A DNA stretch of 64,000 bases from Setoptus koraiensis (taxonomy: Eukaryota > Animalia > Arthropoda). How positions within the stretch are numbered: the first letter of the stretch is position 1; each line of letters starts with the position of its first letter. Positions 7,082 through 61,871 of the stretch are shown piece by piece. The stretch covers positions 21,638,001-21,702,000 of the forward strand of contig CM106585.1 of assembly GCA_048013815.1 (NCBI GenBank), written 5' to 3'. The translations under genes and the position numbers were made by a program. The notes below the pieces were generated by a model. It did no database searches and was not told where the DNA came from. It saw only the letters and a program-made list of their open reading frames with translations.

Positions 7082-7367
7082 GCTTGGCTTGTTTGTTGTA
7101 TTTGTGGATCTTTTGATCCCATTTGGTTGAATGCTTAGATTGCATTTTTTTAAGCTTCTGCGATAGACATTGTAGCAATTTTGTTGTTGGAGCAATTCTG
7201 CAACATGTCTAGTCGAATGATGATCATTTATTACACGATCACTATTAGACACTGCACATACAGTTGAACTATTGTTCTCGTTCTCAATGGCTGCTATGTT
7301 GTGGAGGCCCTCGGTTGCTTGGCTATTATTGCATTTTCTTTTACTGTTATTGATGTTGGTGCAACCA

Positions 7368-16600: not shown

Positions 16601-18319
16601 AGATATTATTAGCTTGCATGATGCAGACATGCGATCAGTTAGATTGGTTCGGACAAACAATAGCGTCTTATCAGACATCATCATTATTTCTATAAAGCGA
16701 ATACCACAAGCAATGTGCAGAATAGTGTCTGGTTGAATAACCGGGTAGATATTTCTTGCTTGCATAACACGTGTTATGTCATCTATAACTCTTGCTCTTT
16801 TTATCAGAGTGAATAAATTATAATTTATTACAATGGAAGAGAGTCTTGATCGCGAGTAGACAATTGAGCGCTTTTCAAAACGTAGAGTTCGCATAGTGAC
16901 TATAGGAGGGGCGACTGAACATGTACATTTGCTGACCAGAAAAGGAGTTTAATCTCTTAACGTCTTGCATTTGCAATTCAATGAGCTCGTCATTATCAGA
17001 TGCCAATGATCACGATTTGCGCTTTTATTTGCCTCACAAGCGTCATCATTCAAGACAAACAAAAAGTTTTCGAGAGATCCTTCGCCATTCTTTTGGACGT
17101 TGCCTATATTGTGCTTCTATCGCTTATAATTTATCACACTCAAATGTGAGAAGATCGTGCTGTAGAGGAAGACGATTATGCTAAATATTCCCATCGATTG
17201 TTCGGTATCTCTCTATCTAGATTTATAGCATCCGCGGATTCGATCCAAATAGCATGCAATAAAATGATGCATAACTGTTCTTGGAAAGCATTCGTCACGT
17301 ATCGGTTGTTTTTCTGCTAACTTTCATCAAATAGATCTCTATGAATAACCCACTGTCGCTTTTTTCACCGACGAATGCTTCAGCAGCATAGTAAATTTAT
17401 AGAAAATATTGATTTGTAAGAGAAGCAGAACCTTCTTTAGATAGTTTTAATTATTTATTTTGTATATCGTATGTTTATTATCGTATAACAGAAGTAAAAC
17501 AAAACAGAATCAATATGCTTAGATTTACATTTTCCCTTTTCATTCTCCCATTAAATTTTTGTGTGACAAGTGGCATGATTTTTATGCAACTAATTATATG
17601 ATTGATGTGTTTGCGCTCTCATAAAAAATAATCTCCTAGAGAATCGTAAAAGTGAATGGTTCATCTTGATACAATATGATATTGGACAATATGAACAGAT
17701 TTATGATGAAGGCTATATCTCATAGCAGATTCATCTAGGTTCCTCTGGTCGATTGGGATAGTCAAGCTGTGGAGATTCCAGAGAGAATAATAGACCAGCC
17801 AGTTAGCCATCAATCTTGTTATTTTAACTGGCTTGCAACATTATAGTAAACAATCTACCATTTCATAATATTAACCCGGCGAGAATCTATTCATGTATTT
17901 GCTATCTTATCGGATGGATTTGGTCGTCTTAAATGCAGTTTCATTGTCGATCGCTACATAATATATTGGACACAAAAAAGAGATGATCATTCATCGGTAA
18001 TAATTATCATCTGCATGCTTGTAACATTTATGACATAGTAGCAATTTACACCTCATACTGTAAGTTTGATTAACAAGAGTAGATGTCTAAGTTGGTAACT
18101 ATGCTCAAGTAGTTTAATACATCTTATGACCAAAATTAGATTCAACCTTGTAAATATTCTATACTGGTTGTAAAATAGCACTCAGAAGATCATATCTATG
18201 TTTCTATTTCGGTTTTTATCCTTTTAAAGTTGCGTATAAGATTGCGCATGATGTTCAACATTGACTTTAGTGTCAAATGTGGTTCCAATTTTATTCACTA
18301 TTCGGGCTTGAGTATTGTA

Positions 18320-20740
18320 TTATATCTCCCACAGACTAGCATCTTTAGCATCACATTTCGCTAGACCAATGGTACCATTGCTACCAAGTTGGACATAGGC
18401 ATGAGTATCATTTGTTCTGATCGCAATCGCACTATGTGTTCGTAATTCAATAATCCATTGTTGAGCACAAGCTCTAGATGTTGAGTCACACATTATAGAT
18501 GAGCCATTGTCACCAACAGTCCAATAACGATCTTTGGATATCATTTTCAAGTAGCAACAATCATATTGTGCTATTCCGGAACCAAGTGGAGATGATGATG
18601 AAAGAACACTTGCTGTATCAGACATACCGTCACTTAGGTTGATAGATGGGGCTATTTTGTGAATCGATGTGATATTGTTCATGTTATTTCTTCCGTAATT
18701 ATTGTTATTGTTATTGAGATGAGCGTTAGACAATGAATTTATTATAGCAGCAACGCTAGGTGTGGCAGTCTCTATTGTTTGTTCATTTTCCTCCTCTTTT
18801 TGGTTCTCAAATGATGCAGTAGTATTGTTATTTGAGTCCAGATTGCCATCACTCAAGTCGGTAATCATGGTTATACCCTTAACGTGAGGCTCAGATATAG
18901 ATGTTAGATTATTAGTTGGTAATAACGATTGCTGAACGTTGTAATCGGAACTTATGTATTCCACCAAAATAGAGTCTGGTGCAGTCTTGTTGGCCTCTAG
19001 GACACCGCCTGAGTTGGTTTTAAGTCCCACAAATCCACTACCATTTACAGGTCGCAAGTTCAGAGATCGGCGATTTTGGAATCTCATGATAAATCTGACT
19101 GGCTCTTGGTTTACAGTTCCTGTTCCCAAATACAATTGGCCACTTTTACGTGCGCATATCCACCGGTCTCCCTCTAATTGTTTATTCCTACTTGTGCTTA
19201 ATTTCAACGAGCAAGTAGCATCGTTTTCACTCCAAACTAAATCAAAGTAATCTTTTGAGGACTGATTATCTGTTTGCTTACTGACATGAACTGTGGATGA
19301 GGCTGATCCGTTGGCAACGGACCAGAAACTACAATCATAGGTCATAATAGTCCAATCTTTTGTTTTTTCGTGATATTCAAATTGAAATGTCTCGTGTTGC
19401 GTTGTGGGTTCATTCTGATTGGCTGAAAGATCGACGCCTTGTTTAATGCTGACCCATTTATTGTTAAATGTAGCCTTCAGCGATAATTGAATGGGAGCTG
19501 CCTCAAATATGAAAAGCTCATCGCGTGATACTCCGGCAGATCTGGATTTCAGAACTGATGATCGACCGGTGGCCGCCAGGTATAGACCGTAATAGTCACG
19601 AAATGCGAGATATCCACTATGATACCTGTATTTTAAGGAAACCATGATTCGAGATGATAAGCGGTTAGAATATTGTTTTCAAGTATGTCTAAATTAGGCA
19701 ATGATGCGAGAAGACGTGCGAGGAGATACTCACTCTAAAGTAAAGAGACAATTTTGTGGCGGCAAGAAATTTTCACCTAGCTTGAGGTCTGCGTTGTTCT
19801 GAATGTTACTAGATAGCTTGCCAACCGTAGATCCTTTGTTTCGAGATTGTGGTACCTGAGGCGTTGAAGAAGAATCCGGCAATTTGATGCAACGACCTTC
19901 GTTGGTGAGATAATAGCAGTCGCTAGTCAGCACTGCAAAGCGCCCGCCATCAAAATATTTGAACTGGAATAAGGTTTCGGGCCCCCAGCTGAATGAGGCA
20001 TCGATTTGTGCTTGCTTGTTCTCTGGACAGCTCGCAAGTTGCATTGCTGCTTGGCTAAGAAAGTCTTTTTCTGTGGTCACCCTGGCGTAACGTTTTCTGC
20101 CCAAGGATTTAAGAGCAAAAAACGACGCACCTCTAGCCGGTGTCAAGTTTAAGTGCCACAATTCTGCTCTAGATCTGGGTACTTTGGCGTTGCATGAAAG
20201 CATTCCATCCTCTGTGGTGCCTAAAAAGTAACCTCGCTTAACATTTCTAAACGCCCAGAAAATTTGCTCCTCTTTGTTTTGTCCTTGTGACATCGAGCAT
20301 ATAGTAATTGTGAATCTGGCATTTTCGGTTCTTTCGTCTGAGTCGCATGTTACATTACCGAATGAGTCTACTGCCAAGTATTTATTTAGATGAGATTTAA
20401 TTGCCACATTTTCGTGCTCATCAGTATCTTGATCCGAAACAGACCCATTCGAGCCATTCGAGCTTTTGACGGATGTTAAACTTAAACAATTACTGGAATG
20501 CAAAGTTATGTTCGGTTCGCCAGCCTCAAAACCTGGACCACACAGAGCTTGTGGAGCGGCCGTTGTTGAATTCGGTATTATTGGGAATCCGTCTGGGCCT
20601 AGTTCTTCAGGGAATGGTTCAATGGTCCATTGTTGTTTCTTTTTAAGCGTCTGGCCATTGGCGTTGATTTTATAGCCGAACGTCTCGGCTGTCAAATAGC
20701 GATGTTTCCCATTGATGAGACCAACTGTAGAGTTCCACAT
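18320..20740 (-). CDS. sn: Fascin (singed) actin-bundling protein, 2 exons: 20740-19734 and 19625-18320 (770 aa)
   Basis: Beta-trefoil motifs: VGLINGKHRYLTAETFGYKINANGQTLKKKQQWTIE, AIKSHLNKYLAVDSFGNVTCDSDE, DELFIFE..PIQLSLKATFNNKWVSIKQGVDLSANQ, ETFQFEY, C-terminal ASLWEI. A 108-nt GT-AG intron (19733-19626) joins FTLE|YHSGYLAFRDYYGLYLA in frame. Confidence 0.93.
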
Positions 20741-23700
20741 TCTTTCTTTTTTTATGGCTTTTTTGAAATATCAATGAAAAATAATAATAAAAAACTCTCG
20801 TTGTTATAGATTGGTGCACTAAAATATAGTTAGTATATATTTATATATATATCTATATATTTGTTGAAATAGTTTGGCTTCTTATAATATATTGTTACTG
20901 GCAAATTGTTGGGCGTTCTTGGTGGATGGTAATGTTGATGGTGAGTAGCCACTACAGCTTGTTAGTAGGAAGGATAACAGAGAAGACGGATATCCTTCTT
21001 GGGTATGGATTCGGAAAGTTTTAACATTGGATAAGAGTTGCTAGTTTCAATAATACATTGTTTGTTGCCCTTCCTGGACTGATTATTATCAATGGTGATT
21101 GGTTGACATAAATGGTGATCGCATGTAGTTGTTTTTGAAGTAGTCCACATATTGTGTAACAGTAGCAGTCAAGATAAAGACAACATTATTAGCATATTAT
21201 TAGACAATGTACTGGATAGGTGAGCTTGTCTAATCATTGGTTAGATAGAATGCAGTTAGTTATTGCATCCAGGTAGTGGAGGGATCAAGCTGTTGCACAC
21301 AATCTACATATCACTGTCGTCGAATATTGGTTAATAGTTGATGATAGTGACTAACTAGTAATTTGTTAAATTTATCTTGTCTTGTGTGACGACTACCAGG
21401 AAGATTTGACCACTCTACGCTGTTATCTCCTGGTGTCTATTGGTCGAGTTTTCATACAGGGATTGGTTACTCAGATTGTCATACATGTATATGCATCTGA
21501 GGTATGTAGGTGTGCGTCTGTTTGCAACGTACTCTCCAGCTTCTTATCAAGAATACTAATAAGAGTAGATACTACAAGCAAAGTATATACTAGTGAGACA
21601 GCTCTATAGAAGTGATATACTGTAAAGAGGCAGTGGCCATAATAGTATGGGTTGTGGAAAACTACAGTTGAAACATTACAGAGGGTAAAACTAGTAATAT
21701 GATACACATTGGTCAATGGTGTCTATGCGCTAACTCACTTGTATCCATAATGTATCAGAAAGCGAGAAAGACAACGATACGAACAATTGATAAATTGATC
21801 GGCTTTCGTTGCTCTGGACGCTTGCCGTTGTCATTCGTTCAGAGTTCTTTTGTTTTTGTTCTCTTTCTCTTTTTAGTTCGTTTCTTTTCTCTTTTTTACC
21901 ACTTCTTCTTTTTCGACTCGTTGTGATGCAAGAACTAAAAGTAACTAACTGATTTCAGTTTGGTACATTCATTTCGAGGATGGTTGAGTGAGTGTGTGTG
22001 TGTGTGTTTGTGCAGAAAGTGCAAAAGTTGCTGCTGCTTGCAGCTATGCCCAACAATGGTTGCTAACAGTTTGGTCAGCTTGCCACACATTGGCCACAGC
22101 TACCGTTGCTGGAGATTACAACATCACAAGTAGTTTTGTTTTAGCTTTAGTCTTAGCTTTAGCCTGTGCTTCAGTTCAAGATTTAGTTTTAGTGAGTCTG
22201 TCGAGCATCCACCACTTTATGAACAGCACTAACTAATGTTATTACACAAATGGCCGGCATTCAGTCATCGCTAGTAGAGTACACTAGTTACTGGCGCAAC
22301 TAGCTGGACTAAGCAGATGAAGAAAGAAAGAGAGATTCTGATTACGATTGTTACGCTCGAGTTTGTCGCAGCAGCAATAATAACAACAGCATGCACCATA
22401 AATACATATCATGGACACTGCTCGCCAACAAGAGAGAGAGAGATGTCCCCACTGTAGGATGTATGTGTAAATGCTCGAATGTTTGTGTGTGTCCATCGGC
22501 TGAAATGAGTTTCAGTTGGTGGCTCTAGTTTCACGACTCTCTCTCCCTCTTTCTGTGGAGTCCTCATATTACTCATGTCGCTCGTTTTGCTCATGTTGCT
22601 CTCGTTGGTCATGTTGACGGCAAAGTTGTGTGTGCCAGGTTTTCATTTGTGTCGCCTGGCTGTCATTTTACATGTGGAATAAATTTTCTTTTATATGGAA
22701 CACACACACACACAAATATAATATTATCGGATGTCTACTATTGCTGTATAGCGGCGCCTGCGCATGGGCCAAGCCGACATGTGCGCCAGTGATATTAATA
22801 TTATCTTGTGTGTCTATCAACGCAAGTTGTGTTTGCGTTGGCCATTGGGCATGGGTAGCGAAGCCAAGATTTATTGTCTCTCGTTAATTGTATGCACACG
22901 ATGACAGGGTCCGATCAATTGTGCACACTGCATCAACATACAATGCATCATAAATCATTGTCGTTGGCTGTCATCGCTGTGTCCAGTCACGATACCATTT
23001 GGCTGGATTGTATTTTAAAATAACTCTCTCAAACGGTCTCGAGTGACACAATTGCATATCTCCCCTGTACGTTGAGGCTGCTTTATGTTGAAGTGTGTGA
23101 TAGCCGATAGCTATTAGCTAATGTTTGTGTCTGCATAACTCTCTATAAATAGCCAGCGATAATTCGGGGATTGCACTTACCTATTGTTGTGATTGGTCGA
23201 GTTGTGCCGGTCTAGGCGGTGCCGCTTCGATTGTAACTTGGCTTCGACGATATATTGCTTGCCGCTGTCTTGCCGTGTGTCTAATATCTCTCTTTTTGGC
23301 CGATTTCTGTCATGTCGTGGCATCCATGCACAATGATAATAATAATAATAATTGTAGCAAGTAATAAATATTCGTCATATAATTGGTTATAGTTTGATTT
23401 TTTGATGATTGTCGACGATTGTTGATGATCGTTGAGTTGACGACGTTGAGTTGAGACGATGCAAGACGATGCAATATGATGCAATGATACCAATGATACA
23501 CAGCGAATAAATACAAGTTAATAAATAGATAGATATAATTATAATAAAAGCAATATTTATGATGATATCAATGTAATTCGACAATATGCAATGTGGGCCT
23601 AGGTTCGATCAGTTCGGTCTGTCGAACGTTTTGTTCTCGTTGTCGATACTTGCATACGCGAGGCATGTGAGCCATAAACGAGACTCTGGTTAGTGAAAAC

Positions 23701-32914: not shown

Positions 32915-34948
32915 TTACAAATAATGATAGTACCGGTAATAAAAATCAGATGCAGAGATGAAGAAAACAATTGGTAATTCACAATTGTCCGTTAGTCACA
33001 ACAACAACAACAACAACAACAATTAATTATGCAGCAGTAAATCTCACACAAGCACAGTGGCAGGCGCACAATGTTGTGACTGGCGCTTGTGATTAACGGT
33101 TGTGTCACTGGCGCTTGTGACAACTCAATTAGGTCGCTCCGATGCAAATTAGCTTGTCGCATCACTCACCTGTTGCCCATGCGCTGCTTTAATGACACCT
33201 TTACACTTGCCAGACTCTACACTGCAGAGTCCATTCTATGCACTCTACAGCATGCACTCTACGGCACTCCCTATAGAGTATAGAGTTTGGCAAGCTCATG
33301 CTGCTTGTGCTCACATGATGATATCATAATGACAGTGGCATGATCATACTATGTCATACTATAGCGATATATTGATATATTATACTGCTCAATTTAGATT
33401 GGCGCTATTTCAACTATGCTGTCATGACCCAGGAGACAGTCACCTCAACGGTCGCTGCATTGTGGCCCATTGACAATGGTCACTCAGTCACTCTTATTAT
33501 GCTCGCTCACTGCATGCTCGCCAGCAACGGTAAAATGGTTACGTAAACACAGCGTCGTCGGCGTCGTCGTATTTTACGGCAACGTCAACTAACAGCTCGC
33601 CGCTGTCGTGTGATGCTGCTTGTGAGCTGCTGTCATGTCGATGCAGTGTTGCATGCCATTGCAACAAAACCATTTATCTATTCTCGGTGCACATCAATTG
33701 ACAACAATTACTCTCTATATAAATACTCTCCGCTGCATTATACATATGCTAGTGATACCAGTGATACTATGATATTATGATTGTATGACAATGCTCAATC
33801 AATAGCGACTTCAATCAATGGTAACAGTGACGCAACAGCAAAGCTGTCAACAGCGGCACCTGAGAAACAAGGTGACTGTTGTTTGTGGTTTAATTCAATT
33901 GATAATTTATAACAGCAGTCAATTGCATGCTGCAGACCCAGTGCAAACAATGACGCAACCCATGATGCAACAAACAGCTCGACTCATCACTGCACAATCG
34001 CTGGCCACTCACTGGCTGAACAAGTGTACTGTGCAACTGTCTGCAGTAGTCGACTCACGGTGAGTCGATGAATGACACTTGTTGCAGCGTTGCAGTGTTG
34101 CATTGGTGCATTGTTGTGCGCCGGCGCTGTTGCCGTTATGCGAGCCGCTGCTCGATGAAGTTGCTCAGGTGATTCTGTGCCTCTGTTTGCGACATATGCG
34201 AATGTCCACTGGCTGACTTAGTCAGTGACTGACCGACTGACTGACTGACTGACTCACACTGATCAACTCGATCATCACACAAACACACGAACAAACAAAG
34301 GCTTGTCGCACCACCGCTACCTGGCACCACCAAACAGCAACCAACAAACACCAAACTGTTGCATAACTATTGCATAAACTCTCGCACAGACTCTCGCACA
34401 GACCCTCGCACAAACTATCGAGTAGCGAGTTTGGTGTCGACTGGTCGACAGGTACTGCACAGGCTGCTGCAACCAAATATACATAGGTTATGACGGCTAC
34501 GGCGATGTGCATGCAACCCAAACAATCTGCGCATCTCATTCAGTGGGCCACAGTGAGACAATGGCCACTGGTGGGCAACAATTGGCAATTGTCTCGCTTC
34601 ACCGGGTGCTCAACACGCCGCAATTTAAATCCCTTCACTTACTAAATCTTTGAATCTCCGCTCACCGAATCGCCGCTCACTAGAGCTTGCTCGCTCTGCC
34701 TAGACAATATACCCGAGATGATATATCGCGGATAATGTATCTCTGATAATGGATACAGATGCGAGAGGCCTCCAGAATGCAGTCGCGAATGCAGAGTGCG
34801 CTGTAAGATGTGCCAGAGTACAACGTTTTTGTGGATCTCACAGACTACTCTGCCGCATTTTTCAATGCGGCAGTCTTATTTATTGATAACATATCGCGGG
34901 TGTTCCATCGAACAGTGACCCACTCCGATTTTCTTCAAACTCAACACA

Positions 34949-35365
34949 GGGGCCCCGAAGGGGCCCCAAAAAACAAATAAAGTGGTCCGGAGGTGCGGAA
35001 ATTCTTACTTCCGGAGATATGGAAAAATGCATTTTTTGGGCCTCAGAGGGGCCCCAGACCAAAAATTTTCGCATGATTGTATAGATCTCAACGATGTCTC
35101 CGTAGTTCAGTTGAATTTAGTCTCATAGAGCATCCAAACCCCCAGATAATAAACTTCAATTCTATGAACCACTTCCGGTCTACGTGATTGTAGACTTATC
35201 GAACATCGTACGACTCTCCGTGTGTCGGGCACGCATTTGCATCATTTCTGGTGTTCGGGTGTGTGACAATTACTCGGCCGAAGGCCGGGGTTGTCGGTTC
35301 GAGCGAGGGTTGAGGGCGAAGCCCTCAACCCGAAGCGAGGCAAGCTTGCGAGGCCGAAGGCCGAG
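34949..35365 (+). repeat. Cluster of GC-rich hairpins with GAA triloops
   Basis: GGGGCCCC-GAA-GGGGCCCC (34949-34967), CGGCC-GAA-GGCCG (~35275-35287), GGGTTGAGGGC-GAA-GCCCTCAACCC (35307-35331), GGCC-GAA-GGCC (~35352-35362). Confidence 0.85.
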
Positions 35366-35709
35366 TCGGTAAAGATCGAAAGAGGGCCAGTATAGATGGA
35401 AGGTTGAGTAGCGAAGTAAATTAGTAATAACAAGTTATACTGATTATACCAGTATAAGAGCGCTTAATTTTTCCAGTGAACAATCTTAGAGGTTTGGACA
35501 GTTTATTAAGAAGTGATAAGTGCTAGCTGTCTCTAGAAAGTTTCAAGAATTTATCCTGGTGAGAACAGTTTCGAAAATCGCACATAATGTATGGGCACAT
35601 GTGATCAGAAATCACATGTATTGAATGAGCTAACATGATCCAGAATTGCCTATAGCGCCAATACTAGAAACAGAAAATTGATAAGACTTGCACAGATCGT
35701 GTATAGCAT

Positions 35710-36070
35710 CGATCCACCTCCTCACAATACATTAACCTCTGCATGAGCCCGAGACTTAAAATTCAATCCACCTCCCTGAAATGTGTGTTTGGGAGGTGGA
35801 CGAACCTTCGAGTCTCAAACTTGTATGTAGGTTGTTGCATGCTCAGGAGGTGAACTTATTGTTTAAGCTCAAGCTAGTCCACCTCCCAAGCATGAGTCGC
35901 CCCACGCTATTTCGAGTAGCTAAACCTATCTCGTTATAGCTTCGGTCCACCTCCTGACTAGACATGAGCCCGAGACTCAAAATTCAATCCACCTCCCTAG
36001 TAAATGTGTAATTGGGAGGTGGACGAACTTTCGAATCTCAAGCTTGAGTGTACCTCCCACCTCCCAAGCA
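35710..36070. repeat. Array of CACCTCC/GGAGGTG motifs with a ~90-bp direct repeat (offset ~231 bp) containing internal palindromes
   Basis: Forward motif at 35713, 35767, 35878, 35946, 35988, 36057; reverse at 35791, 35846, 36014. Segment 35732-35823 is repeated at ~35963-36046. Confidence 0.85.
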
Positions 36071-36122
36071 CATTTCAGCCTACACACTCACTAAGCACTG
36101 ATTATGCTAGTGCTAATGTATG

Positions 36123-36330
36123 CAAGCACACAGCACGTGACTCTATAGATCGAAAACTGTGAATATCCCCAATAAATCGGTACGTGGATATTCACTGGCA
36201 TACAAAGTCGGAGTATTCACAAGCACACAGCGCGTGAATCACCATAGCACAATTGGTGAATATCCTATGAAATGCACGAATTAAGTATCCACCATCATAC
36301 CGTGCGTGGATATTCATGCGTGATCTTCAG
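36123..36330. repeat. Two ~97-bp units with inverted GTGAATATCC/GGATATTCAC motifs
   Basis: AAGCACACAGCNCGTGA at ~36124 and ~36221; GTGAATATCC at 36159 and 36256; GGATATTCA at 36186 and 36308. Confidence 0.8.
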
Positions 36331-36789
36331 GATCCCACAGCACTACATCATAAGCCCTTAATTAAAATTAAGCGCTAAAAAGTGGGTATGAATCCCTCCA
36401 TTCTTTTTTCAACGATAGTGCACGCGCTAGGACTCGGTGGGTGGTCTGAATAACTGCGGGCGCAGATTCGATCCGCGCCGCGCTCATTGGTCACGCCTCT
36501 TTAGTTTTACCGCTTTTATTCTATTCCTGTGGCCTCTAAGTATGATCTGCCTTCGGTATGGAGGAGCGAATACACTACCGGATGTTCGTGCGTGTAGGTA
36601 TGGCCGATAATTCCCTTCACTTAACCCTCAAATACCTTGAAATACCCACAATGCGGAACCTCGGCTATCTCGGGAACGAAGAATTTCCTCACTTCCGGAA
36701 TACCCGTTCGGGTATCAGGGTACAATACGCTACCCAAAAATACCCAAAATACCCAAATCGGGGTGGGTCATTGTTCGATGGAACAACCG

Positions 36790-36983
36790 ATGACTTTTAT
36801 TACAAAGTGCAGTGGGGCGGTAAATAGGTGTCGTGGGAGCCTCTCGAAAATCTCTTGCCAGATTGTGCTCAGTTGGTGCACAATTATCACCTACAGAAGA
36901 CAAAAAATCGCGAAAGCCCAATAACGGCCGAGCAACCTAAGGTCGGCCAAACTATACGAGCCTCCCGAGCCTCAGCGCGATGA
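36790..36983 (+). pseudogene. Chromodomain pseudogene (C-terminal half, internal TAG)
   Basis: Translates DDFYYKVQWGGK*VSWEPLENLLPDCAQLVHNYHLQK (YxVxW, SWEPxENL). The N-terminal half is replaced by repeat-derived sequence. Confidence 0.6.
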
Positions 36984-37290
36984 TTGCGCATCCATTGGAG
37001 ATGTCGTCGCGCCGTATATTCTTGGAGCATCGGTGGACGCTCTTCGGGATGTTCCGGATCCCGCGCAAAGTTGTTATTATGAACCCAAGTTGGTTCCTCG
37101 TATCCCTCCCAACGGACGAGATATTCAATATTTTCGGCTGCTCCGACTCGGCGGTGGTCAAGTATCTCCGCGACCACATATTCTTCTTCTTCCTCGAATA
37201 TGAATTCGGGAGTGGCTGGCCGAGTGGGTGAGGGTCTACCTAACCAGACAATGGCCCATGTATATATGTCACGGCGGCATACACCCGTGT
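36887..37290 (-). pseudogene. Truncated RING-chromodomain paralogue (end of RING, linker, chromodomain)
   Basis: VCRRDIYTWAIVWLGRPSPTRPATPEFIFEEEEEYVVAEILDHRRVGAAENIEYLVRWEGYEEPTWVHNNNFAR...WMRNHRAEAREAR aligns collinearly with ORF 40243-40989. The 5' end is cut by the foldback at 37291. Confidence 0.75.
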
Positions 37291-37409
37291 CAGTAAATAT
37301 TTGGACGGTGGGAAAAAATTAATACCTCTCCCCTGAGCGCAGAACATCGAAAGACCAGAACTGCGCGCGGGGTAGGCATTATTTTTTTCCACCGTCCAAA
37401 TACTTACTG
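37291..37409. mobile_element. 119-bp foldback/MITE-like element
   Basis: ~36-bp terminal inverted repeats CAGTAA(A/G)TATTTGGACGGTGG(G/A)AAAAAA..., reminiscent of Tc1-type TIR sequence. No TA TSD seen. Confidence 0.7.
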
Positions 37410-37544
37410 ACGCGAGCGTGTTATGCGACGGCGTAGCACCTCCCTCCAACAGACTCCACCTCCCATTTATCTCACTCCTTTGTACTGCATAATAAATAAA
37501 TAAAGGCCAGTATTGTATTGGCATTAAAGGTAAAAGCATGTCTC

Positions 37545-37716
37545 GCTATACTTTCTGACCTAACAAGAGTATGTGGCAGAGCGGGACATGGGCATTGCTG
37601 TGCAGTGTCAAGTGGGAGATCATGCAAGGCTGACACGCCTCATGTAGACATGGCGTGGTAACCTTGATGTCATCTAGACATTGGTCATCCAAGCAAATTG
37701 GGCGATAAAAAACCAT
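37545..37716 (-). pseudogene. Degenerate RING-finger fragment paralogous to the N-terminus of ORF 40243-40989
   Basis: MVFY(R)PICLDDQCLDDIKVTTPCLHEACQPCM...(V)PLCH versus MCFDDLMVTTPCGHIACQPCM. First and seventh ligand codons are mutated. Confidence 0.6.
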
Positions 37717-37810
37717 TGTGTTGGCAGTGTCGGAATTAATAATAATAGATGTTTATTTAACTTTAAAAATAGCAAGAATGAACAAAAAGAGTGAAAGTAG
37801 CGAACAAAGT

Positions 37811-38744
37811 GGGGCTGTTGTAGCGAACTGGGCGTAGTTCCGATCAGGGTATTTTGGGTATTTTTGGGTAGGGTCTAGTGCCCTGATACCCGAATGGGTA
37901 TTTATAAGATGTAGAAATTTACGGTTGTCGAGTTACCCGAGGTACCGCTCAGTGGGCGTTTTGAGGTACCCGACGACCGCTAGCGGTTCCCACTGCTTTT
38001 TTTTGAAGGTATTTTAGTACAGCCAGGTACAGACAAGTATAATAATCTCAGAAATTGTATACCGGAAGTGTGAAAATGAACCCGATGTGCGATACTGCGA
38101 TTTACCCGGGTATTTCGGGTATCCGAGTATGCAATAGGCTACGCGAGGGTAATAATCACAACCGCTTGAATGCGGCATGACCGTTGCGGGTAGCACGAGG
38201 TACGCGGGGTACCCATGCTCACTTGTGTATAATAGACAATAGCCCTTCCGTCTGCCATGCAGCTTGGGCGCGGGCCGGAGGAGGGGTTCGGCCTCCAGTC
38301 GTCCACGCCTTCGGCCTGCGGCCTCCGGCGGGACGACTGACGGCCACCTAACTAAAAAAGATTCTTCCCGAGGACTGGGGGTCGAGTGGGCGGGGCCCGT
38401 GATCGGGCCGGGTTTCGACCAATTATGTGCTCAATTAACCTTGCTCTAGCCAGCTAGGCTTAGGGTTCGCGCAAGCACCGTCTGAATACGTTAATCTGCA
38501 TGAAATTCCTAAATATCTCTGCAACCGGAAGTTATAGAAATTCGAAATCTATCTCATTGGACTAGGTGTGGTCGAATATACCGACATACTAAGTTTCAAG
38601 TTTCTAGCTTGAAGCCGAGGCCTAAACCGAAAGCAATGGTTTCTACACTTCCGGTCCAAAAAATTTTTCATCAGGGACCTCCAAGGTACTCACACTGTGA
38701 GTTTCGTCGCGATCTGAACTACGCCCAGTTCGCTACAACACCCC
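37811..38744. mobile_element. ~934-bp non-autonomous TIR element with 5-bp TSD (AAAGT)
   Basis: TIRs GGGG(C)TGTTGTAGCGAACTGGGCGTAGTTC(C/A)GATC at 37811-37845 and 38711-38744 (25-bp perfect core). AAAGT flanks both ends (37806-37810, 38745-38749). Confidence 0.8.
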
Positions 38745-38749
38745 AAAGT

Positions 38750-39430
38750 GGACGATCGATCGATCAACAATGGGGAAAAGAGTGCGTAATTGCTGTGGTC
38801 AATCAACACGTATTAATCAAGCACAAGCTATTGTCACGCATCCAACATGTGGTCAAATGAAATGTCTATTGGTGGACAACCCGACACAGTTGAGGCCGTG
38901 CAATTCAGATTCGGTTCTGACAAAGCGACAACATGTGAGGTTCCAGGGTGTGGAAATCACAGATTCATTTTATGCTCTCACTGTGGCAAAGTTCTTTGCC
39001 TCCATCATTTTTTGGAAAGGGTGTGTTTCCATGAAATACAGCATGATTTCATCATGCATGTGGAACATCCTACACCGCTTCACATTCAAGTTAACTCAAA
39101 TTGTGCCTCTAGCAGCCGTTGCGATGGAGAGATACGAGCATAGGCATAAGTTTGTATCAGTCACGCGTGACAAATTGTAGCAACAAATAAAACTCTGAAC
39201 TTTGAAAACTTTGATTCAAAACTCCTCTAAAATTGCCTTTCTGACGCTCTCTGGAGCATCTCTAGTCATATCAAATAGGGTATAGAACTTTGAAATTTTT
39301 ATCGGAAAATTGCAAAAAGTCGGGAAAAAACGGGGCTAGGTATAGACCCATTCTGCTCAGCTCCTCGAGCTGAGTCGATCTAGGCTAACCAGGACTCAAT
39401 CTGAGTCTATCAGCTGGATAGGTTTCCTTG
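38750..39430 (+). mobile_element. 3' remnant of a pogo/Tc4-Tc5-like DNA transposon (C-terminal Cys/His zinc-finger tail and right end)
   Basis: ORF 38847-39143 carries CEVPGCGNHRFILCSHCGKVLCLHHFLERVCFH, like the C-terminal CxxC-FIxCxxC-LCxxHF tail of Tc4/Tc5-type transposases (from memory). The end reads CAAGGAAACC on - at 39430, flanked by TAA (TNA-type target). No DDD core or left end found. Confidence 0.5.
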
Positions 39431-39898
39431 TAAGCACACAAACCCAAAATAGCACTACTAAAGACACCAAGCACAGAACCAAAGAGGATGGAAGTGCGTA
39501 GAACAATGGTCAATTAGTAAAATTAATTGGAGCATGTCATCGCCGCGCTTACAAATATGTGCTCTGATTGAGTAGCACAAATTTCTCCCTGTTTCGAAAA
39601 CGACCTATTGATGGTTGATCATACTTGCACAGATTGTTGCGAGCAACATGCACAACACACACACGCAGTATCATCAAAACGGATAGGTGGGAACATGTAC
39701 AGAAATCAATGACTATACACGACATAATTCATCTGAAATTTCTCTCTGCCGCTATAGATAGCTCATTAACACATAGAAATAGATCTAGATGATTATCTCC
39801 GACATGTTATCACATATTCGCTTCTATATTCTAATCATACTTGTCCATCCAAAAAATTAAGCGCTCGAAATACTGATTTGATCAGTATTACTTGTATA

Positions 39899-40159
39899 TT
39901 ATGGCCAGTTGTTTAATTCCTCGTTCTCGAAAGCCCGGACCTCCCAGTAGATAACTACCGCGCTTTCGGCCTGTAAACAATTAATTGCTGGTTCCCAGCT
40001 GTCTGGATACGAACCAGCTGGGGCCCAGCGAATTTTATAATATAATTGTTTCTGACCTTCGACGTCTTCTATCTTATGGTCGACGATGGCGTCTACTGTC
40101 CAGACGTCCGTCGGTGCATTTCTTGGCCGAGTCATCTTAATGGCTATATTGGCGTTCAT
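39899..40159 (-). CDS. Stand-alone chromodomain protein B (86 aa; alternative upstream ATG at 40228)
   Basis: MNANIAIKMTRPRNAPTDVWTVDAIVDHKIEDVEGQKQLYYKIRWAPAGSYPDSWEPAINCL...YWE: chromodomain consensus (aromatic-xVxxIVDH, YxIxW, SWEP). Same length as its paralogue at 41212-41472. Confidence 0.8.
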   Translation of the reverse strand: MNANIAIKMTRPRNAPTDVWTVDAIVDHKIEDVEGQKQLYYKIRWAPAGSYPDSWEPAINCLQAESAVVIYWEVRAFENEELNNWP

Positions 40160-40242
40160 AGAAATAATATAAGATAAGGCTGGGGAATTATTATAATCGT
40201 AATATATATATAACAATATATTTTGCATAACATGCGTGTGTT

Positions 40243-40989
40243 TTAAGTAAAAATGTCTAACATCTTCTCATTTTCGATGCCAGTCCTAGACTGACCTTTA
40301 TTTTGGCTGAGGGAGGTGGGGAACATAGAGTAGGGAGTAAAGAGGTGGAGTCTGTTGGAGGGAGGTGCTACTCCGGCGCGTAACATCTCCCTCCTTCGAA
40401 TGAGATGACATATCTCCTGATATGGTAGAAAGAAGTCGCGATAATCTACTTGGTTTCTACGGGATCGGAGTCGACCAACGGCTCCCACCCGCTCCTGCTC
40501 ACGCTCCAGGGCTCGAGCTTCACGCTCTAAGTTTCGAGCTTCACGCTCTCTAGCCCTTTCTGCGCGACGGCGAGCCTCTCGCTTCCTTTCGCGAGAATTT
40601 CGCATCCAGTCACGGTGGCAGCGCGTAGTATAGCGGCGCAATAGACGAGGTCGACGGCGACGACTTATCCTCGCGAAGTCCTCATTGTGGATCCATGAGG
40701 TCTCCTCATACCCGTACCAACGGACATGGTATAACATGGATCCCGCGATACCAATCCGGCGATGGCCAATCACTTCCTCGATTTCGTAATGGTCATCATA
40801 AATGGGTCCGGGGCTATTGGGCCGTGCTGGTGGCATACCGACTAACCATACTTCGGCCCAGTAAGTAATGTCCCGACGGCATATGTGGCAAGTGTTGGGG
40901 CCTCGCTGGCGACGTAGCGTTTCAGCCATACATGGCTGGCACGCTATATGACCACATGGCGTGGTAACCATGAGGTCGTCGAAACACAT
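40243..40989 (-). CDS. RING-like finger + chromodomain + R/E-rich coiled-coil protein (248 aa)
   Basis: PCGHIACQPC...CHICRR (RING ligands 3-8), then YEIEEVIGHRR...YHVRWYGYEETSWIHNEDF (chromodomain), then REARRRAERAREREARNLEREARALEREQE. The first CxxC is not inside the ORF; an in-frame Cys lies at ~41001 just after an AG. Confidence 0.8.
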   Translation of the reverse strand: MCFDDLMVTTPCGHIACQPCMAETLRRQRGPNTCHICRRDITYWAEVWLVGMPPARPNSPGPIYDDHYEIEEVIGHRRIGIAGSMLYHVRWYGYEETSWIHNEDFARISRRRRPRLLRRYTTRCHRDWMRNSRERKREARRRAERAREREARNLEREARALEREQERVGAVGRLRSRRNQVDYRDFFLPYQEICHLIRRREMLRAGVAPPSNRLHLFTPYSMFPTSLSQNKGQSRTGIENEKMLDIFT

Positions 40990-41211
40990 ATTGTCCAGGC
41001 AACCTGATTTGATATTGTTAAGGTTTTTGTGTGTTAATATTGTACTGTTGAATGATATTTATTATGTGATTCCTGCTTAATGATTATTATCGTTTTTCCT
41101 GTATTGATTTGTTTATTACGGATTAATTTATTGGTATTATTGTGTCGGCTCCAGCATTATTATTTATTGTAGATGGTTAGTATTATTAGATCGATTGTAT
41201 GATGAGTGATG

Positions 41212-41472
41212 TTACATCCAGGTATTTTGTTCGTGTAACATGAATGCCTTCATTTCCCAATAGATGACCACGGCGCTTTCACAATTAAGACAGTTGCTGG
41301 AGGGTTCCCAACTTGCTGGGTAAGCATCTATTGGAGACCATTCGATCTTATAATATAATGTTGTGTCTCCATCTACGGTCTCAATGCGGTGGTCGACGAT
41401 GGCATTCACTACCCATAATGTTGGTTGTGTCTCGCGTGGACGGGTCATCTTGATAATATTATTTTCCGTCAT
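41212..41472 (-). CDS. Stand-alone chromodomain protein A (86 aa)
   Basis: MTENNIIKMTRPRETQPTLWVVNAIVDHRIETVDGDTTLYYKIEWSPIDAYPASWEPSSNCL...YWE; gapless alignment with protein B (50/86 identical by hand count). Confidence 0.8.
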   Translation of the reverse strand: MTENNIIKMTRPRETQPTLWVVNAIVDHRIETVDGDTTLYYKIEWSPIDAYPASWEPSSNCLNCESAVVIYWEMKAFMLHEQNTWM

Positions 41473-41808
41473 AAAATCTTCATACTTTTCTGTTATTATA
41501 TTGGCGGATAATCGAGGAATAAGGTAGAATATGATTTTATTTAATGTGGCAAGAAAATTGTCACCGATTATGTTTAAGTCGTCGATGAAATTTCCAAATG
41601 ATCGTGTATAGTTCGATCAGACGGTCGAATCTTCCTTGTGGTCGCATTTTATGTTTAGTGTGAGAATTGGTGAAATGATAGTACCGCATTCCTTCAGAGG
41701 GTCGGTGCAACACGTGTTGTGTGAGTTCGTTAGCTTGTTGGTTAACATGCTAATATAAATATGTCCTGTTATAGCTCTATCTTGTAATATGTTGCGGCGT
41801 TTTGTGGT

Positions 41809-42378
41809 GTGTTGATACCAGGAACAAAGAACCCACTTCAAGATGGCGGATGTGGTGGGTGTTGTGGGTATCGCGACTATAGCGTCTCTGGTGGTGGTGC
41901 TAGAAAGTTATTGATCTTGAAATCCCATTCATACCTTTGTTGCCTTCTCAAAAACTATCGGGGTATCAGTGGAATTTTACTAAAAGAGGCTTGGGTCATA
42001 AAGCAGTCAATTCAGACGCGAAATGACACATGCGGCTACGCAAATTTGTGCGCCTTTGATGAGTTTATTAAATTGTTAGAAAATCATGGGCAAGTACCCC
42101 GAAGCCTGATGTATCCCGCACGAAAGGTAGCAGAGAAAATGGACATTTTCGGGAGGGTAGCTGAAGACTCTGCTTCAAGGGGTAAGGGAGAGGGGTCGTG
42201 GAATTTTTCAAGAGGCGATAAGTCGTTTATGGGAACCTGCCCCTTTTGCGACGACTTCAAACTAAAACAAACAGCGAAAAACCCCTATCAGTGTCGGGCT
42301 GCTCACTTAAAGGGGCACCTCAAAAATAAGAATTATTCAAAGAAATTTATAGACATTAAACATTATTCTATGTACTAG
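41809..42378 (+). CDS. Hypothetical protein with a weak clan-CE protease-like QxxxxxCG motif and a C-terminal C2H2-like zinc finger
   Basis: IQTRNDTCGY and CPFCDDF...AAHLKGH. True start unclear; the 5' part may be non-coding. Confidence 0.4.
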   Translation: MLIPGTKNPLQDGGCGGCCGYRDYSVSGGGARKLLILKSHSYLCCLLKNYRGISGILLKEAWVIKQSIQTRNDTCGYANLCAFDEFIKLLENHGQVPRSLMYPARKVAEKMDIFGRVAEDSASRGKGEGSWNFSRGDKSFMGTCPFCDDFKLKQTAKNPYQCRAAHLKGHLKNKNYSKKFIDIKHYSMY

Positions 42379-44015
42379 CCTACTTATGTTCCTATACAAT
42401 TGATTTATTTCCAATTTATTTATGTCCAACCCATAAAAATATGTAACCATCATTATCATACCCTTGTATTGCCAGCAAAAATGAATTAAAAAAAAACAAT
42501 TATTATGATGTCCGTCCATTCCGAGTCAAATTAGTGTCCAAACGTGGACGTTTGGAAATTAAGGTGGGGGGGATGTTAAGACCCTACCCTGCCGACCATG
42601 CTACCCAAGGTACCTAATGTAAGATACATGCGATGTCTATCGTTCATTAGTCTATGTGAGGTAGACTCAGACCAATGTAATGAATGCATGAATTCTGCTG
42701 TTACCTTTCTCAATATACATTGAAGCGATTGTATGTCGCCGCTCGCATTACACCTGTATACCAGCTACATAACAGTTATATCTGTATACACAGACTGCTT
42801 GTATGGAGATGGACACAACTGCACACAACTGGTAGCAACAAGCGACAAGCTTGCCGAGAAGATGCAATTAACTGTTCGCTAATTGCGCTGCGCAACTAAT
42901 TAGATTGTTTGTTTTAGTCTGCTATCCAGCTTACATTATATAACTGACACTGTCAGGCGCTGTCAGGTTTACATATGCACACTGGACCTTGTTTATTGGC
43001 CAAGTGGCTTCGAGTGGCTGGCTCGACAATTAGTTGCAAAGTTTCTTTCTGTCTACAAGTTCACACACAAGCGACGAGAAAAAGACGAATTGTTGATTAT
43101 TTTGGAGGCTTTAATGATTTAACTTTTAAACGATGCCATTGTAAATCGCACACACATCTACATCATAAAACATGATCTAAATCACATTATCTGCATCATA
43201 ACATGATCTGCATCATATTATCTGCATCACAATGTGATATAGATCACATTATATGATGCGCATGATGAGCCGAAAAACAAGTGTTGACTTATATACATAA
43301 AACATCTCACACACTTACTTGCATGTGTATTAATTTATATAATTATATTGGTAAGTATATTTATAGTGTGTTGTGAATTGCGGATAAAGTATTGATAATA
43401 CAAAAACAAGTGCAAACAGATAAAGTGTCCGCTCTCGCTACAACTAATTGTATTGTATGACTGATTGTTAAAAGGACCGTTTGTTTGTGATGTGAGCCAA
43501 CACTCAAATAACCTATAGGCCTAAAATAAAATATATATATCATAAGCTTCATATTCTGTTTATATACAAGCTGTGTATATATAAGTTATATGTTGTATGA
43601 TATAACCAATGTATATATATATACGACCAATTCTTCTTGTTGGCTTGTCCGCTTGCCTGTTGCGTAACAACATCCATTCACACACACACAACATGATGTA
43701 ATCACTTATAACTGTTACTGTAGTAATGACAGTTATTAGCCGTTTATATCCATTGCAACAACAGCAACCGGTTTCGTTCGCTGGGCATGCCACACGAATG
43801 ATGTGCTGTGATGATGCGGCTAAACAATTACAAAATTACTGTCGTCGTTAGTGCCCACTTAGAGATGACTCCTCCGTTTGTTAATGAGACTAATAACTCA
43901 TTTCATGTCTTGTTGTTGCTGTTGTTGTTTCATTCATCTCGCCACATTCCTTTGCCACTGGTACAGGTACAGCTGCTCAGATAATTGTCCATTTACTATC
44001 ATACTGACAGGTAAT

Positions 44016-44083: not shown

Positions 44084-47000
44084 TCAGAGGCATGGCGGCG
44101 GATTGACATGGCCAAACATGTTGAACTCGAGCATACAGGTGAGCACCAGAAACAAACAGTAGGTCATTAGTAGGGCCAGGCCTAAAATGGACAATTGTCG
44201 TATTATTATGATTGCATAGATACGTTAATTAATTATCATCAGTATTATTAACATAAAGGAGAGGAAACAATTATTGCGTAATTAGTAATTGTGAGTCATT
44301 ATGTCATCATCATCATTGTTATTGTCCGTGCTCGATGAACAGGTGAGTGATTATCTCGTCTTGCGATCGTTGTTGGTCGCAACACACGATCATTGCATGA
44401 CATGTGATACACGATCGAATTGCAAGTTGACCATTGTTATCGCTGACATGATCGCCGGCAACAGCCGCCAATTAAAACTTACCGAGGCGAGGCTGCAGTG
44501 TCCAGTTGTAACGATTGAATAGATATATGGTGGCCACTAGCGACATAAACAACAGTATAACGGAATATATAACGCCGCGACTATTGATGGTGGCCGTAAC
44601 TCCTGCAAGCGCAACATTGGCGAGCGAATTAAAATGAAAGCAAAAAGTTAAAGTTAAAACCAGTTAAGAAAACAGCTGATTGTCAGTTTCACTGGCCAGT
44701 TGTGTCAGAGTATCTTGAGTCAGCTGTTGCTGACAGTTGCACTCACCTGGATAGATGGCGGTCTGAATGAACCAGGGCAGTGACAGGCCAATGAGAATGT
44801 CAAATATGTTACTTCCTATGGAGTTGCTCACCGCCATGTCGGCCATTCCCTAAGCACGCACAATGTACAACACATGATAATAATTAGTTAATGATACGAT
44901 AATGATAGAATAATTAATTAGCGGTTACCAGTATCAACACAACTGTCAACTTGGCAACTTGTGCATTGATACAATCGGATTGTAGCAATCGGATTGTAGC
45001 AATCGGACAATTGTTATGACACTCACCATGCGCGCCACGTGAATTGATGAATAGGCGTCCGGCACGGAGGTGCCCGCCGCCAAGAAGGTAATGCCCATGA
45101 TGGAGTCGGGTATGCCCAAAGTGAAACCGACCAGTGTCACCATCCACACCATCACATAGGAGAACAGTGCTGTCCACGTTATAGATATGATAAATGTCAA
45201 CCAGTATTTGTCTGGATACAATGTGCAATCGGGTATTGTGTGATAAAGTACAAAATTGCAGGGTATTTTTGCCAGCCACACATAATAATCTAAGCGGCCA
45301 CGCTCTGGCCCGGGCGGATTGTGCCACATCTCAAGATCCTCTTCGGCCACCAATGAAAATTTACTTTTAGACACCGTTGATTGAGTGGCATACCGGGCAA
45401 TTCGCTGCTGCTGTCCACTACTGATCGATTGATGATTTTGGTTTTGTCCCGCTGCACTTCCGGTGCTGCCGCCAACCATTGAAGTGCCATAGTTGTTGTA
45501 AACTGTTGTTCCACTGCCAATGCTGGCCTGTTTGCCCAGTTGTTGTTGTTGCTGTTGTTGTTGCGCTAATTGTTGTGCTGTCTTATGTAATTGCTTTAAA
45601 CCGTAACTATTTGAGCCGCCTCTCGTTACTCGTTCTCTGTCGTCATCCTCGCCCTCGGGCCCAATATAACTTGCCTCAATTGATTGTTGCTGCTGCAGGT
45701 GGCGCTGGTGGCGCTTCCTTTTCACCTCTTTGTATTGTATTTGCCAAACGACAAATTGAATGGCCGATCTAAATCTCAATCTACACGAAAATAGTCGCTT
45801 GTGTTTTAGTATCACCAACAATGCAGCCCGAAACATATGATCGTCCATCATTATGGGATCCATTGTTTGTTGTTGCATGTTGTTGTTGTTGCAATTAGTT
45901 GCACTGTTTGCCGTCTTGCCACCCATGAGAGACACGTTAAAACTGAATACGTCGTCGGCGCCATCTATCGAGCCGGCACTTATTAATTTGCTTGTCAATG
46001 GTGTAGTGAGCAGGAATTTGGTGACATATTCTTTTATTTGATCATTATGTATCATTATTGTTATGTAAACACCGTATAAGGCTAGCATGGCCAACGATTC
46101 GTAGGCGCTCACCCGTTCGTCATAGATGAACTTTATCCATGTGAGCACGAGGCGATTTATTGGGCCGAAACGGTGGGCCGAAACGGTGGGCCGAAAGAAT
46201 GAGGCGAAATGGTGGGCCGAAAAAGAGGGGCACAGTGTGGAAAGACGAGAGAGTTGATGATTAAAAATCAGGCCTACTAACTCGTGATTAATTGTAATCA
46301 ATTAATCATATAATTGTAGTTAATTAATCATATGATTGTAATTGATCAAAGCCTTATTCAACCTACCAGAATGAGCACCAATACGGTAAATGTGTAAAAT
46401 ACTGAGTCGCGTAACACTGGCCACCAATTCAAGTGGCTCACGGTGGTTGTCACAAATGAACAAATGCCAATAACGAACAATATGTTGAACACCGCAGAGC
46501 CCTGATTTGACCATTAGACAATTGGATAGTCGGGTAATTTGTTAATTGATTTGCATGAAAGAAACAGAGACAACAGGCATACAGTTACAAAAATGAAATA
46601 GTTGAGCCGGTGAGAATCGATGGCCGATTAGCTAATTAAATTGATTAGCCCAGTGTTTAAAAACAACAAACACCGGCTTAAATCACTCACCACAATGGCG
46701 CCTGTGCCCACGTCGCCCTTGGCTATAAAAACTCCCAATATTGCCGTGAAGAGTTCCGGTGCGGAACTTCCGGCACTCATGAGGGTGGCGCCAGCGACGT
46801 CGTCGCTCAAATTGAGTCTCTGGCATGGTGGTGGTGGTAGTGGTCGTCGTTGTTGTCGTTGTTGTCGTTGTTGTTGGCATTGGTGGGTCAATTTATTTAT
46901 TGGGGTCAACAAGGCAGCCGGCAGAAGAGACAAAATGCAAGCAAAGAAAGGAGCAATAAAGCGACATTAGTTTATATGAGGCTTAAGAGGCATGTCGTGC

Positions 47001-61140: not shown

Positions 61141-61774
61141 AGTGTCACTATGTGCCGGTATAATACAATGTAATAATACTTGTTGTTGTATCTAATGTCT
61201 ACGGTGATGCTATTGCAATCAATGGTCGGCTTATCATTTGCGTGTGACCTGAAAATGCTGTTGCTGCTGCTGTTGCCATTTGCTTGAGCTGATGTGATAT
61301 TTACACAATATTTACAGTGGCGGGCAAGTGGCACAAAATCGGCAAATTCGAGCGGCCCCAAGTCGCTCTGCAATGGATAATTTATAATGAAACGCAATGC
61401 GAGCGAGCAATATAAACATAACGTCGTTGTTGTTATTACTGTTGTTGTTGTTGTTGTCGGTGTTGTTGCTGTGACAATGGTCGCGCAGAAAATAAACAGC
61501 AAAACGACAAATGAACGACAAGTCGCCAGAGTGCGTGTCGGGCATATAGCGACAATCGCGCGCAGCGCCAATGTGTCGCTATATGCCCATCGCACACACA
61601 TTGTGAGTCATTGGCTTAATGGGGGCCAGCGCGTGCGTGCTGCACATCAACCACTGAGCACACCACATAGCACCCGCGTCAGCGACCATATAGTCGGGGC
61701 CCCAGTTGCAGCGGCACAGCAACTTTGTAGGAATTGTGCGATCTAAATTTATAAAGCTGCGCACTGTGCACGTC

Positions 61775-61871
61775 TCACCATTGCACCATTGCACCATTGC
61801 ACCATTTCACTATTTCACTATGTCACTATTTCACTATTTCACCATTTCACTATTTCACTATTTCACTATTT
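61775..61871. repeat. 8-bp tandem repeats (CACCATTG, CACTATTT)
   Basis: Direct reading. Confidence 0.85.

Follow-up and report, generated by a model that had tools for sequence, protein, structure and literature searches.

Canonical PRC1, in which a CBX chromodomain subunit is combined with RING1/PCGF, and UHRF1 both pair a histone-methyl reader with a RING ligase, and small chromodomain genes with a rapid turnover are known from Drosophila, where the HP1 paralogues Rhino and Oxpecker are fast-evolving, intronless, and lineage-restricted, are born by duplication, and decay. Chromodomains are also carried by the integrases of Maverick/Polinton and adintovirus-like elements (PMC8502044). Here, we describe a cluster of chromodomain and RING-chromodomain genes in a 64,000-nucleotide stretch of the Setoptus koraiensis genome (GenBank assembly GCA_048013815.1, contig CM106585.1, positions 21,638,001 to 21,702,000 of the forward strand; hereafter referred to as the window, with all coordinates given relative to its first nucleotide). 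The unit of the cluster is a type-A gene, encoding a lone chromodomain, followed ∼220 bp later by a type-B gene, in which a RING finger is joined to a chromodomain; the unit lies on the minus strand, spans ∼1.3 kb, and is present twice, head to tail. Our favored reading, to which we give about even credence, is that these genes form a lineage-restricted cluster resident between genes of a mite-like arthropod and that the cluster would encode a methyl-lysine-directed ubiquitin ligase.

The chromodomains of the cluster have the fold of the HP1/Swi6/CBX and CDY/MPP8 readers and belong to the same sequence family, with the B type sharing the three-aromatic cage and the preceding acidic run of HP1/Swi6 and the A type being nearest to CDY1, Clr4, and Chp1. 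In contrast to HP1, CBX, and CDY, however, the cluster genes are tiny and have no chromoshadow domain, hinge, or other modules, the A type lacks the third aromatic of the cage, and orthologues were not found. In sequence, the RING fingers are most similar to RING E3 ligases of the RNF4 type (SUMO-targeted ubiquitin ligases, STUbLs) and the BRCA1/RMA type, with which they share the C3HC4 spacing from the third ligand onward, but the fingers open with C-x4-C instead of C-x2-C and are fused to a chromodomain. With PRC1 and UHRF1 the cluster would have in common the reader-plus-RING logic, which by analogy provides the most likely working model for the fusion, although homology is limited to the generic domains, no other PRC1 or UHRF1 domain is present, and reader and RING are found in one ∼250-aa polypeptide. 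PRC1 and UHRF1 achieve the coupling by many subunits or domains, and no simpler natural version of it would be known than a fusion of ∼250 residues. Finally, the cluster genes resemble Rhino and Oxpecker, both of which are found among the weak PDB matches, in being small, intronless, lineage-restricted chromodomain genes that duplicate and decay; the host lineage is a different one, orthology cannot be demonstrated, and a RING partner gene is lacking for the paralogues of flies. If the cluster is a host invention, it would be a non-insect case of chromatin-reader genes being born and lost rapidly.

Chromodomain and RING-Chromodomain Genes

To define the domains of the cluster, 117 stop-to-stop frames (at least 40 aa) between 34 and 43 kb were screened with Pfam. 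The only families found are Chromo (PF00385; gathering score 25.1 bits), RING families, and the C-terminal zinc domain of Tc5 transposases, and the main matches are significant after multiple testing. Four chromodomains and two RING fingers are statistically supported, and a fifth chromodomain is marginal.

The type-A gene of unit 1, chrA1 (41212–41472, minus strand), is intact and encodes a chromodomain-only protein of 86 codons that scores 31.2 bits against Chromo (E = 2e-7) and whose PDB sequence matches include CDY1 and Clr4; an AATAAA is located ∼45 nt past its stop codon. An AlphaFold model of the 86-aa protein has a predicted local distance difference test (pLDDT) score of 81 and shows the three-stranded sheet and C-terminal helix of a chromodomain, and when it is compared with the PDB by Foldseek, the top matches are all chromodomains (CDY1, Chp1, MPP8, CBX1, HP1, and Rhino; probability 1.00, target template-modeling score ∼0.7–0.8). 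In unit 2, the frame of the type-A gene chrA2 (39899–40228, minus strand; conserved part 39902–40159) is likewise open, with a Chromo score of 26.1 bits, so that both A copies exceed the gathering score.

The type-B gene of unit 1, RING-chrB1 (40243–41001, minus strand), consists of an open 248-codon frame (40243–40989) with conserved coding sequence starting from 41001. From its N terminus, it encodes an RNF4-like RING (∼40870–41001) preceded by almost no sequence, a linker, an HP1-like chromodomain (∼40651–40797), a basic coiled-coil stretch, and a tail made of a local repeat, W (40261–40407); a second copy of W, located within unit 2, is complementary to it (93% over 44 nt). Several RING models match the N-terminal region at E values of 2e-5 to 7e-4, just under their cutoffs, and the best solved relatives of the RING in the PDB are RNF4 (E = 1.4e-8) and BRCA1 (E = 7e-6). 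In SUMO-targeted ligases such as RNF4, SUMO-interacting motifs precede a dimerizing RING; the likeness seen here is to the RING. The chromodomain alone scores 13.5 bits, below the Chromo cutoff, but is a clear paralogue of the chromodomain piece in unit 2 (tblastn E = 1e-21). An AlphaFold model of RING-chrB1 is of low confidence (mean pLDDT 56), with the secondary-structure elements in the expected order.

In unit 2, the corresponding gene, RING-chrB2 (36887–37716, minus strand), has its own ATG and is broken twice, once by an insertion of local repeat DNA that brings in a premature stop and once at the junction of an inverted segment, where the 3′ tail has been lost. Its RING and chromodomain are detected as separate pieces: the RING piece (37546–37716) scores 22.1 bits against zf-C3HC4 (cutoff 21), and the chromodomain piece (36887–37177), although slightly under the gathering score at 22–24 bits, matches the Swi6 and HP1 chromodomains in the PDB with E values of 6e-7 to 5e-5. 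By tblastn, RING-chrB2 shares 47%–54% identity with unit 1. Convergent with RING-chrB2 is the degenerate chromodomain chrC (36755–36924, plus strand), which contains one in-frame stop and in which the C-terminal half alone scores (Chromo E = 0.24; tblastn E ∼0.05 to chrA1 and chrA2). An initial annotation made from the DNA sequence had counted at least five chromodomains and two to three RING pieces in this region; both RINGs are borne out by the matches just given, as are four of the chromodomains, by Pfam, PDB, or paralogy, whereas the fifth, at ∼36790 on the plus strand, corresponds to the marginal chrC.

As read from the alignments, the cage aromatics Y, W, and Y are kept in both B-type chromodomains, with an acidic run preceding the domain, while the cage positions of the A type are occupied by W, W, and then I or A (i.e., the third aromatic is absent). 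Both RINGs have the eight zinc-ligand positions, and the unusual first pair is common to both copies. No frame between 34 and 43 kb matches Chromo_shadow, which places the genes outside the HP1 family as defined by that domain, and no further Pfam domain of any other kind was found in the type-A or type-B genes in these frames. A B-type chromodomain with three cage aromatics would be expected to dock on methylated lysine, most likely H3K9me2/3-type marks, and the RING would recruit an E2 such that nearby chromatin proteins become ubiquitinated, making the product a reader-writer in a single polypeptide; the A-type protein, with two of the three cage aromatics, would probably be a partner or a competitor on chromatin. 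The domains, the pattern of duplication, and the mark of selection can be read directly from the sequence, and the ligand, the substrate, expression, and a present-day function are inferred.

Duplication and Age of the Two-Gene Unit

Unit 1 extends from 41472 to 40243 and unit 2 from 40228 to 36887, and the two directly abut: the B gene of unit 1 stops at 40243, and the A frame of unit 2 opens at 40228. No frame of unit 1 is interrupted. Of the genes of unit 2, A is open and B is broken, and ∼2.2 kb of other material, including the Tc5-type tail described below, lies between them. The copies have diverged considerably, with identities of 58%–59% in protein over 85–86 aa for the A copies, ∼55% for the RINGs, and 47%–50% for the B chromodomains. 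We compared the units codon by codon in three pieces, each taken separately and never across a break, and found in all three that synonymous differences are saturated (pS 0.73–0.81) while non-synonymous differences are far fewer (pN 0.29–0.34). This combination indicates that the duplication is old and that both units have been under purifying selection for most of the time since. Copies of two small repeats, W (93% identical) and X (76%–94% identical; see below), are younger than the unit duplication, and further vestiges of the unit are found in inverted local duplications.

In our favored reading, the A + B unit was duplicated in tandem long ago, and parts of it were afterward re-copied in inverted orientation. 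Unit 1 has stayed open, the B gene of unit 2 has been broken by one insertion and one 3′ truncation, and the other copies are vestiges, among which small repeats of local origin have built up together with a pogo/Tc5-type transposase tail.

The A-then-B order has been kept in both units despite saturation, which is one argument for a variant of the favored reading in which each unit is a single gene, with chromodomain A, the RING, and chromodomain B joined across a short AT-rich intron. The frame of RING-chrB1 moreover has no ATG before the first conserved Cys (its ATG comes after that residue), and a GT...AG pair of compatible phase can be found by eye in the 220-bp spacer. The candidate donor is, however, absent from unit 2, where a stop codon comes first, the unit 2 B frame has an ATG of its own, an AATAAA follows chrA1, the most similar database protein (P0033; see below) has no N-terminal chromodomain, and no tool predicts the intron; we regard the single-gene variant as very improbable.

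Local Repeats and Sequence Composition

The cluster is embedded in an island of repeats: several are inverted, one is a foldback, two form a 222-bp tandem pair, and a motif array is found as well. Repeat X is ∼130–160 bp long, is present in four to five copies in both orientations, and precedes chrC and RING-chrB2. Copy b (36633–36789, plus strand) carries the motif ACTTCCGG and a mini-array of TACCCAAAA and runs into chrC; copy a (34897–35019, minus strand) is inverted and 85%–91% identical to copy b; copy c (37812–37968, minus strand) lies directly upstream of RING-chrB2 and is 76% identical to copy b; and a weaker copy (∼38062–38124, minus strand) and an end fragment, d (38711–38744, plus strand; 94% identity with the terminal part of copy c), are found beyond it. 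Repeat Y (35425–35472, plus strand) has an inverted partner at 39852–39901, directly 3′ of chrA2, with 84% identity over 50 nt, and the tandem pair (35697–36052), with a unit of ∼222 bp, contains many short self-complementary motifs.

The initial annotation had interpreted the inverted repeats as embedded terminal inverted repeat (TIR) transposons. We rejected this interpretation: the arms overlap, are copies of the upstream and coding sequence of the cluster itself, and recur nowhere else in the window. Since they consist of cluster sequence and are confined locally, the inverted repeats are best described as local inverted duplications of the cluster. That the island is repeat-rich and unlike its flanks, as had also been proposed, is correct, both in that its repeats are confined to 34.9–41.4 kb, with no recurrence in the rest of the window, and in that its tetranucleotide profile is atypical.

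Where 0.76 occurrences of the ETS-like octamer ACTTCCGG would be expected, the window contains 10, and 6 of these lie within 35.0–38.7 kb (at 35007–38654, mostly in X repeats), the others being at 5034, 45456, 46766, and 48198; it may be a promoter element common to the cluster genes. An open reading frame of 189 codons (41809–42378, plus strand) is divergent from chrA1, carries a C-x2-C...H-x3-H motif toward its end, and matches nothing in Pfam or the PDB.

Between the two genes of unit 2 there is an open frame (38847–39143, plus strand) with the C-terminal zinc domain of a Tc5/pogo-type transposase (PF04236; 32.5 bits, cutoff 27.4), which also has a weak HIT-finger likeness to INO80B. Although this domain matches above the Pfam threshold, only the tail of a pogo/Tc5 transposon remains, with no TIRs and with no match to a DDE or helix-turn-helix (HTH) domain in any frame of 34–43 kb. 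The initial statement that no autonomous mobilizing gene is visible needs correcting to the extent that this transposase tail is a fragment of one.

Relatives in Sequence Databases

Exact-sequence look-ups returned no record, and in a full scan of 1.84 billion representative proteins with the RING and B-chromodomain part as query, 34 matches were obtained at E ≤1e-3, nearly all of which are multi-chromodomain repeat proteins, RNF4/RMA RINGs, or lone chromodomains. The best of these, P0001 (544 aa, from a JGI metagenome), has six tandem chromodomains and no RING; its N-terminal region resembles by eye an ADP-ribosyltransferase-type domain. The best match to the fascin gene of the window (see below) is 94% and not 100% identical, showing that the source genome's own proteins are absent from the searched collection.

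A single cluster of database proteins (P0033 and P0035; 173 aa) has the RING-linker-chromodomain-coiled-coil layout of the type-B gene. The similarity is weak (database E = 8e-4, BLASTP pairwise E = 3e-11, 25% identity), and P0033 starts without an additional chromodomain. The Logan contig that encodes P0035 (17 kb) has faint matches to Peptidase_C5 and AAA_14 in addition to a polymerase gene discussed below, a gene set that looks Maverick/Polinton-like or adintovirus-like. On Logan contig L001 (from SRR14578332), a RING-chromodomain gene is located at the contig end, with a 1295-aa protein-primed polymerase gene ∼1.4 kb upstream on the other strand; two small genes (137 and 95 aa) precede the RING-chromodomain gene, in the same order as in contig L002. 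With the chromodomain that ends a Ty3/gypsy-type integrase fragment (P0027), the B type shares 44% identity.

We found no usable literature on a RING-chromodomain fusion or on Maverick cargo in mites; the fusion is rare and, as far as the literature was searched, undescribed, and the family has essentially no relatives even in very large databases.

Resident Cluster, Mobile Element, or Debris

Several observations weigh against a resident, functional cluster. No homologue came up in word searches with the 248-aa or the 86-aa protein, the full scan contains no close relative (the best match is 32% identical, mainly over chromodomain repeats), and no orthologue was seen in the genes called from the organism that has a fascin 94% identical to that of the window, which is unusual for an old resident gene and hints that the cluster is not conserved in that relative. 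The contig of P0035 encodes, next to the RING-chromodomain gene, a 1295-aa protein-primed polymerase (PF03175). The tetranucleotide profile of 36–42 kb is the least typical in the window (r 0.30–0.57, compared with 0.58–0.86 elsewhere), in part, it should be noted, from the lack of the microsatellites that dominate the flanks. RING-chrB1, finally, not only lacks an ATG ahead of its first conserved Cys but has ∼50 final codons that are repeat-derived, and it may be decaying too.

Taken to the limit, such decay leads to the explanation that all copies, the open ones included, are pseudogenes, left over perhaps from a lineage-specific family that has died out or from captured retroelement integrase domains, and that the short open frames survive by chance. 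Most copies are visibly broken, the region has been invaded by small repeats, and the gene calls of the close relative contain no homologue, all of which would be expected of dead debris, as would the state of both ends of RING-chrB1. Debris would, however, hardly show a pN far under a saturated pS in all three pieces compared, nor cage and zinc-ligand residues kept in both B copies, and one 248-codon frame and two of 86–109 codons are still open, with chrA1 folding confidently as a chromodomain in the AlphaFold and Foldseek analysis. We find it improbable that the cluster is wholly debris; as judged from sequence, decay may have reached part or all of the locus.

A different alternative is that the island was left behind by a mobile element or an integrated virus (e.g., of the Maverick/Polinton type), or is its cargo region, that its RING and chromodomain genes would read or counteract the methyl-lysine silencing of the host, and that the mobilizing genes are located beyond the window or no longer exist. 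In addition to the atypical composition and the presence of a transposase fragment and foldback repeats, this is suggested by the fact that the one database cluster with the RING-linker-chromodomain-coiled-coil layout has a member beside a PF03175 polymerase (i.e., a chromatin reader in a mobile context), that very large databases hold no cellular orthologues of the family, and that the B-type chromodomain resembles the Ty3/gypsy-type one of P0027. The link to P0033 is weak, however. Within the 64-kb window, Pfam finds no polymerase, integrase, capsid, ATPase, protease, reverse transcriptase, or DDE domain (in frames of at least 40 aa in 34–43 kb and at least 85 aa elsewhere), and neither the defining genes of Maverick/Polinton and adintovirus-like elements (protein-primed PolB, retroviral-type integrase, capsid proteins, packaging ATPase, and maturation protease) nor their terminal repeats are present. 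A chromovirus origin likewise finds no reverse transcriptase, integrase core, RNase H, or long terminal repeats in the window. No terminal or inverted repeats bound the island, the long inverted pairs being internal (129 nt at 36633/37840) or microsatellites, and none of the island repeats is found elsewhere in the window. The head-to-tail arrangement of the units and the saturated synonymous sites combined with conserved proteins point to long residence under selection rather than to a recent insertion.

The initial annotation had favored exactly such an origin, viewing the island as transposon or virus cargo loaded with chromatin readers and ubiquitin ligases and recommending a search for linked transposase, RepHel, pPolB, or capsid genes. 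The character of the proteins is upheld, inasmuch as the chromodomains are of the methyl-lysine-reader type and the fingers of the RING E3 type, but the cargo interpretation has no in-window support: apart from the truncated Tc5-type tail, hallmark genes are missing from the 64 kb, as are bounding repeats, and what is found instead are tandem duplicates, saturated and constrained. A mobile origin of the cluster is possible; on in-window evidence, a resident cluster with birth and death of its genes is more probable than a mobile island or its cargo, and we consider the mobile-element alternative unlikely. We think it decidedly unlikely that RING-chromodomain proteins are a family of heterochromatin-directed, anti-silencing ubiquitin ligases borne by Mavericks/Polintons, of which the present locus, with its chromodomain-only partner, would be a captured or left-behind cluster selected long after loss of the element. 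Should a link to virus-like transposons exist, the family would be a candidate response to heterochromatin silencing, encoded by the elements themselves.

Host Genes and Other Features of the Window

The resident-cluster reading places the genes between ordinary host genes of an animal genome, and these were searched one exon at a time. The nearest is a Na/Ca(K) exchanger gene (44475–46966, minus strand) with at least four exons, identified by Na_Ca_ex profile matches and by reading the exon frames, the 3′ end of which faces the island. Because the gene ends short of it, the island is intergenic; the possibility that the island lies inside an exchanger intron was rejected when the remaining exons were found at 44.5–44.85 kb. 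The long exon of the exchanger (44949–46301) contains a poly-Q stretch in the cytoplasmic loop. Further away, there are a LIN9/DIRP exon (2–1201, plus strand) and two fascin exons (18320–20770, minus strand). These flanking genes (fascin, LIN9, and the exchanger) have their nearest counterparts in acariform mites.

Among named proteins, the fascin frame is closest, at ∼50% identity, to fascin/singed of acariform mites (Dinothrombium, Tetranychus, Brevipalpus, Leptotrombidium, and Dermatophagoides). A Logan protein encoded on contig L003 (run SRR33593474) is 94% identical to it, and L003 has 82% DNA identity to window positions 16756–20793. When the whole contig is aligned to 13931–20793, the intergenic alignment is patchy, as for a related organism. 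The fascin comparisons mark the host as a mite-like arthropod that is intron-poor and has been little sampled. The organism of SRR33593474 is near enough for a comparison of the presence or absence of the island.

The window is part of a scaffolded assembly and contains a 500-N gap (7368–7867), which explains an 18% GC bin and the spurious long open reading frames at 6926–7945. Scans for tRNAs and Rfam families across the 64 kb were empty, and one frame (of at least 85 aa) outside 34–43 kb has a weak Pfam match to BIRC6 (E = 5e-4). The segment 26600–29000 is GC-rich (50%–56%), with many CAA/CAG/GTT-type triplet repeats and long overlapping frames on both strands, none of them matched by Pfam, and may represent coding sequence of low complexity (poly-Q/T/A) in an exon of a host gene. 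At 61759–61877, an 8-bp unit is repeated in tandem in ∼14 copies, with one variant of the unit shifting to another along the array.

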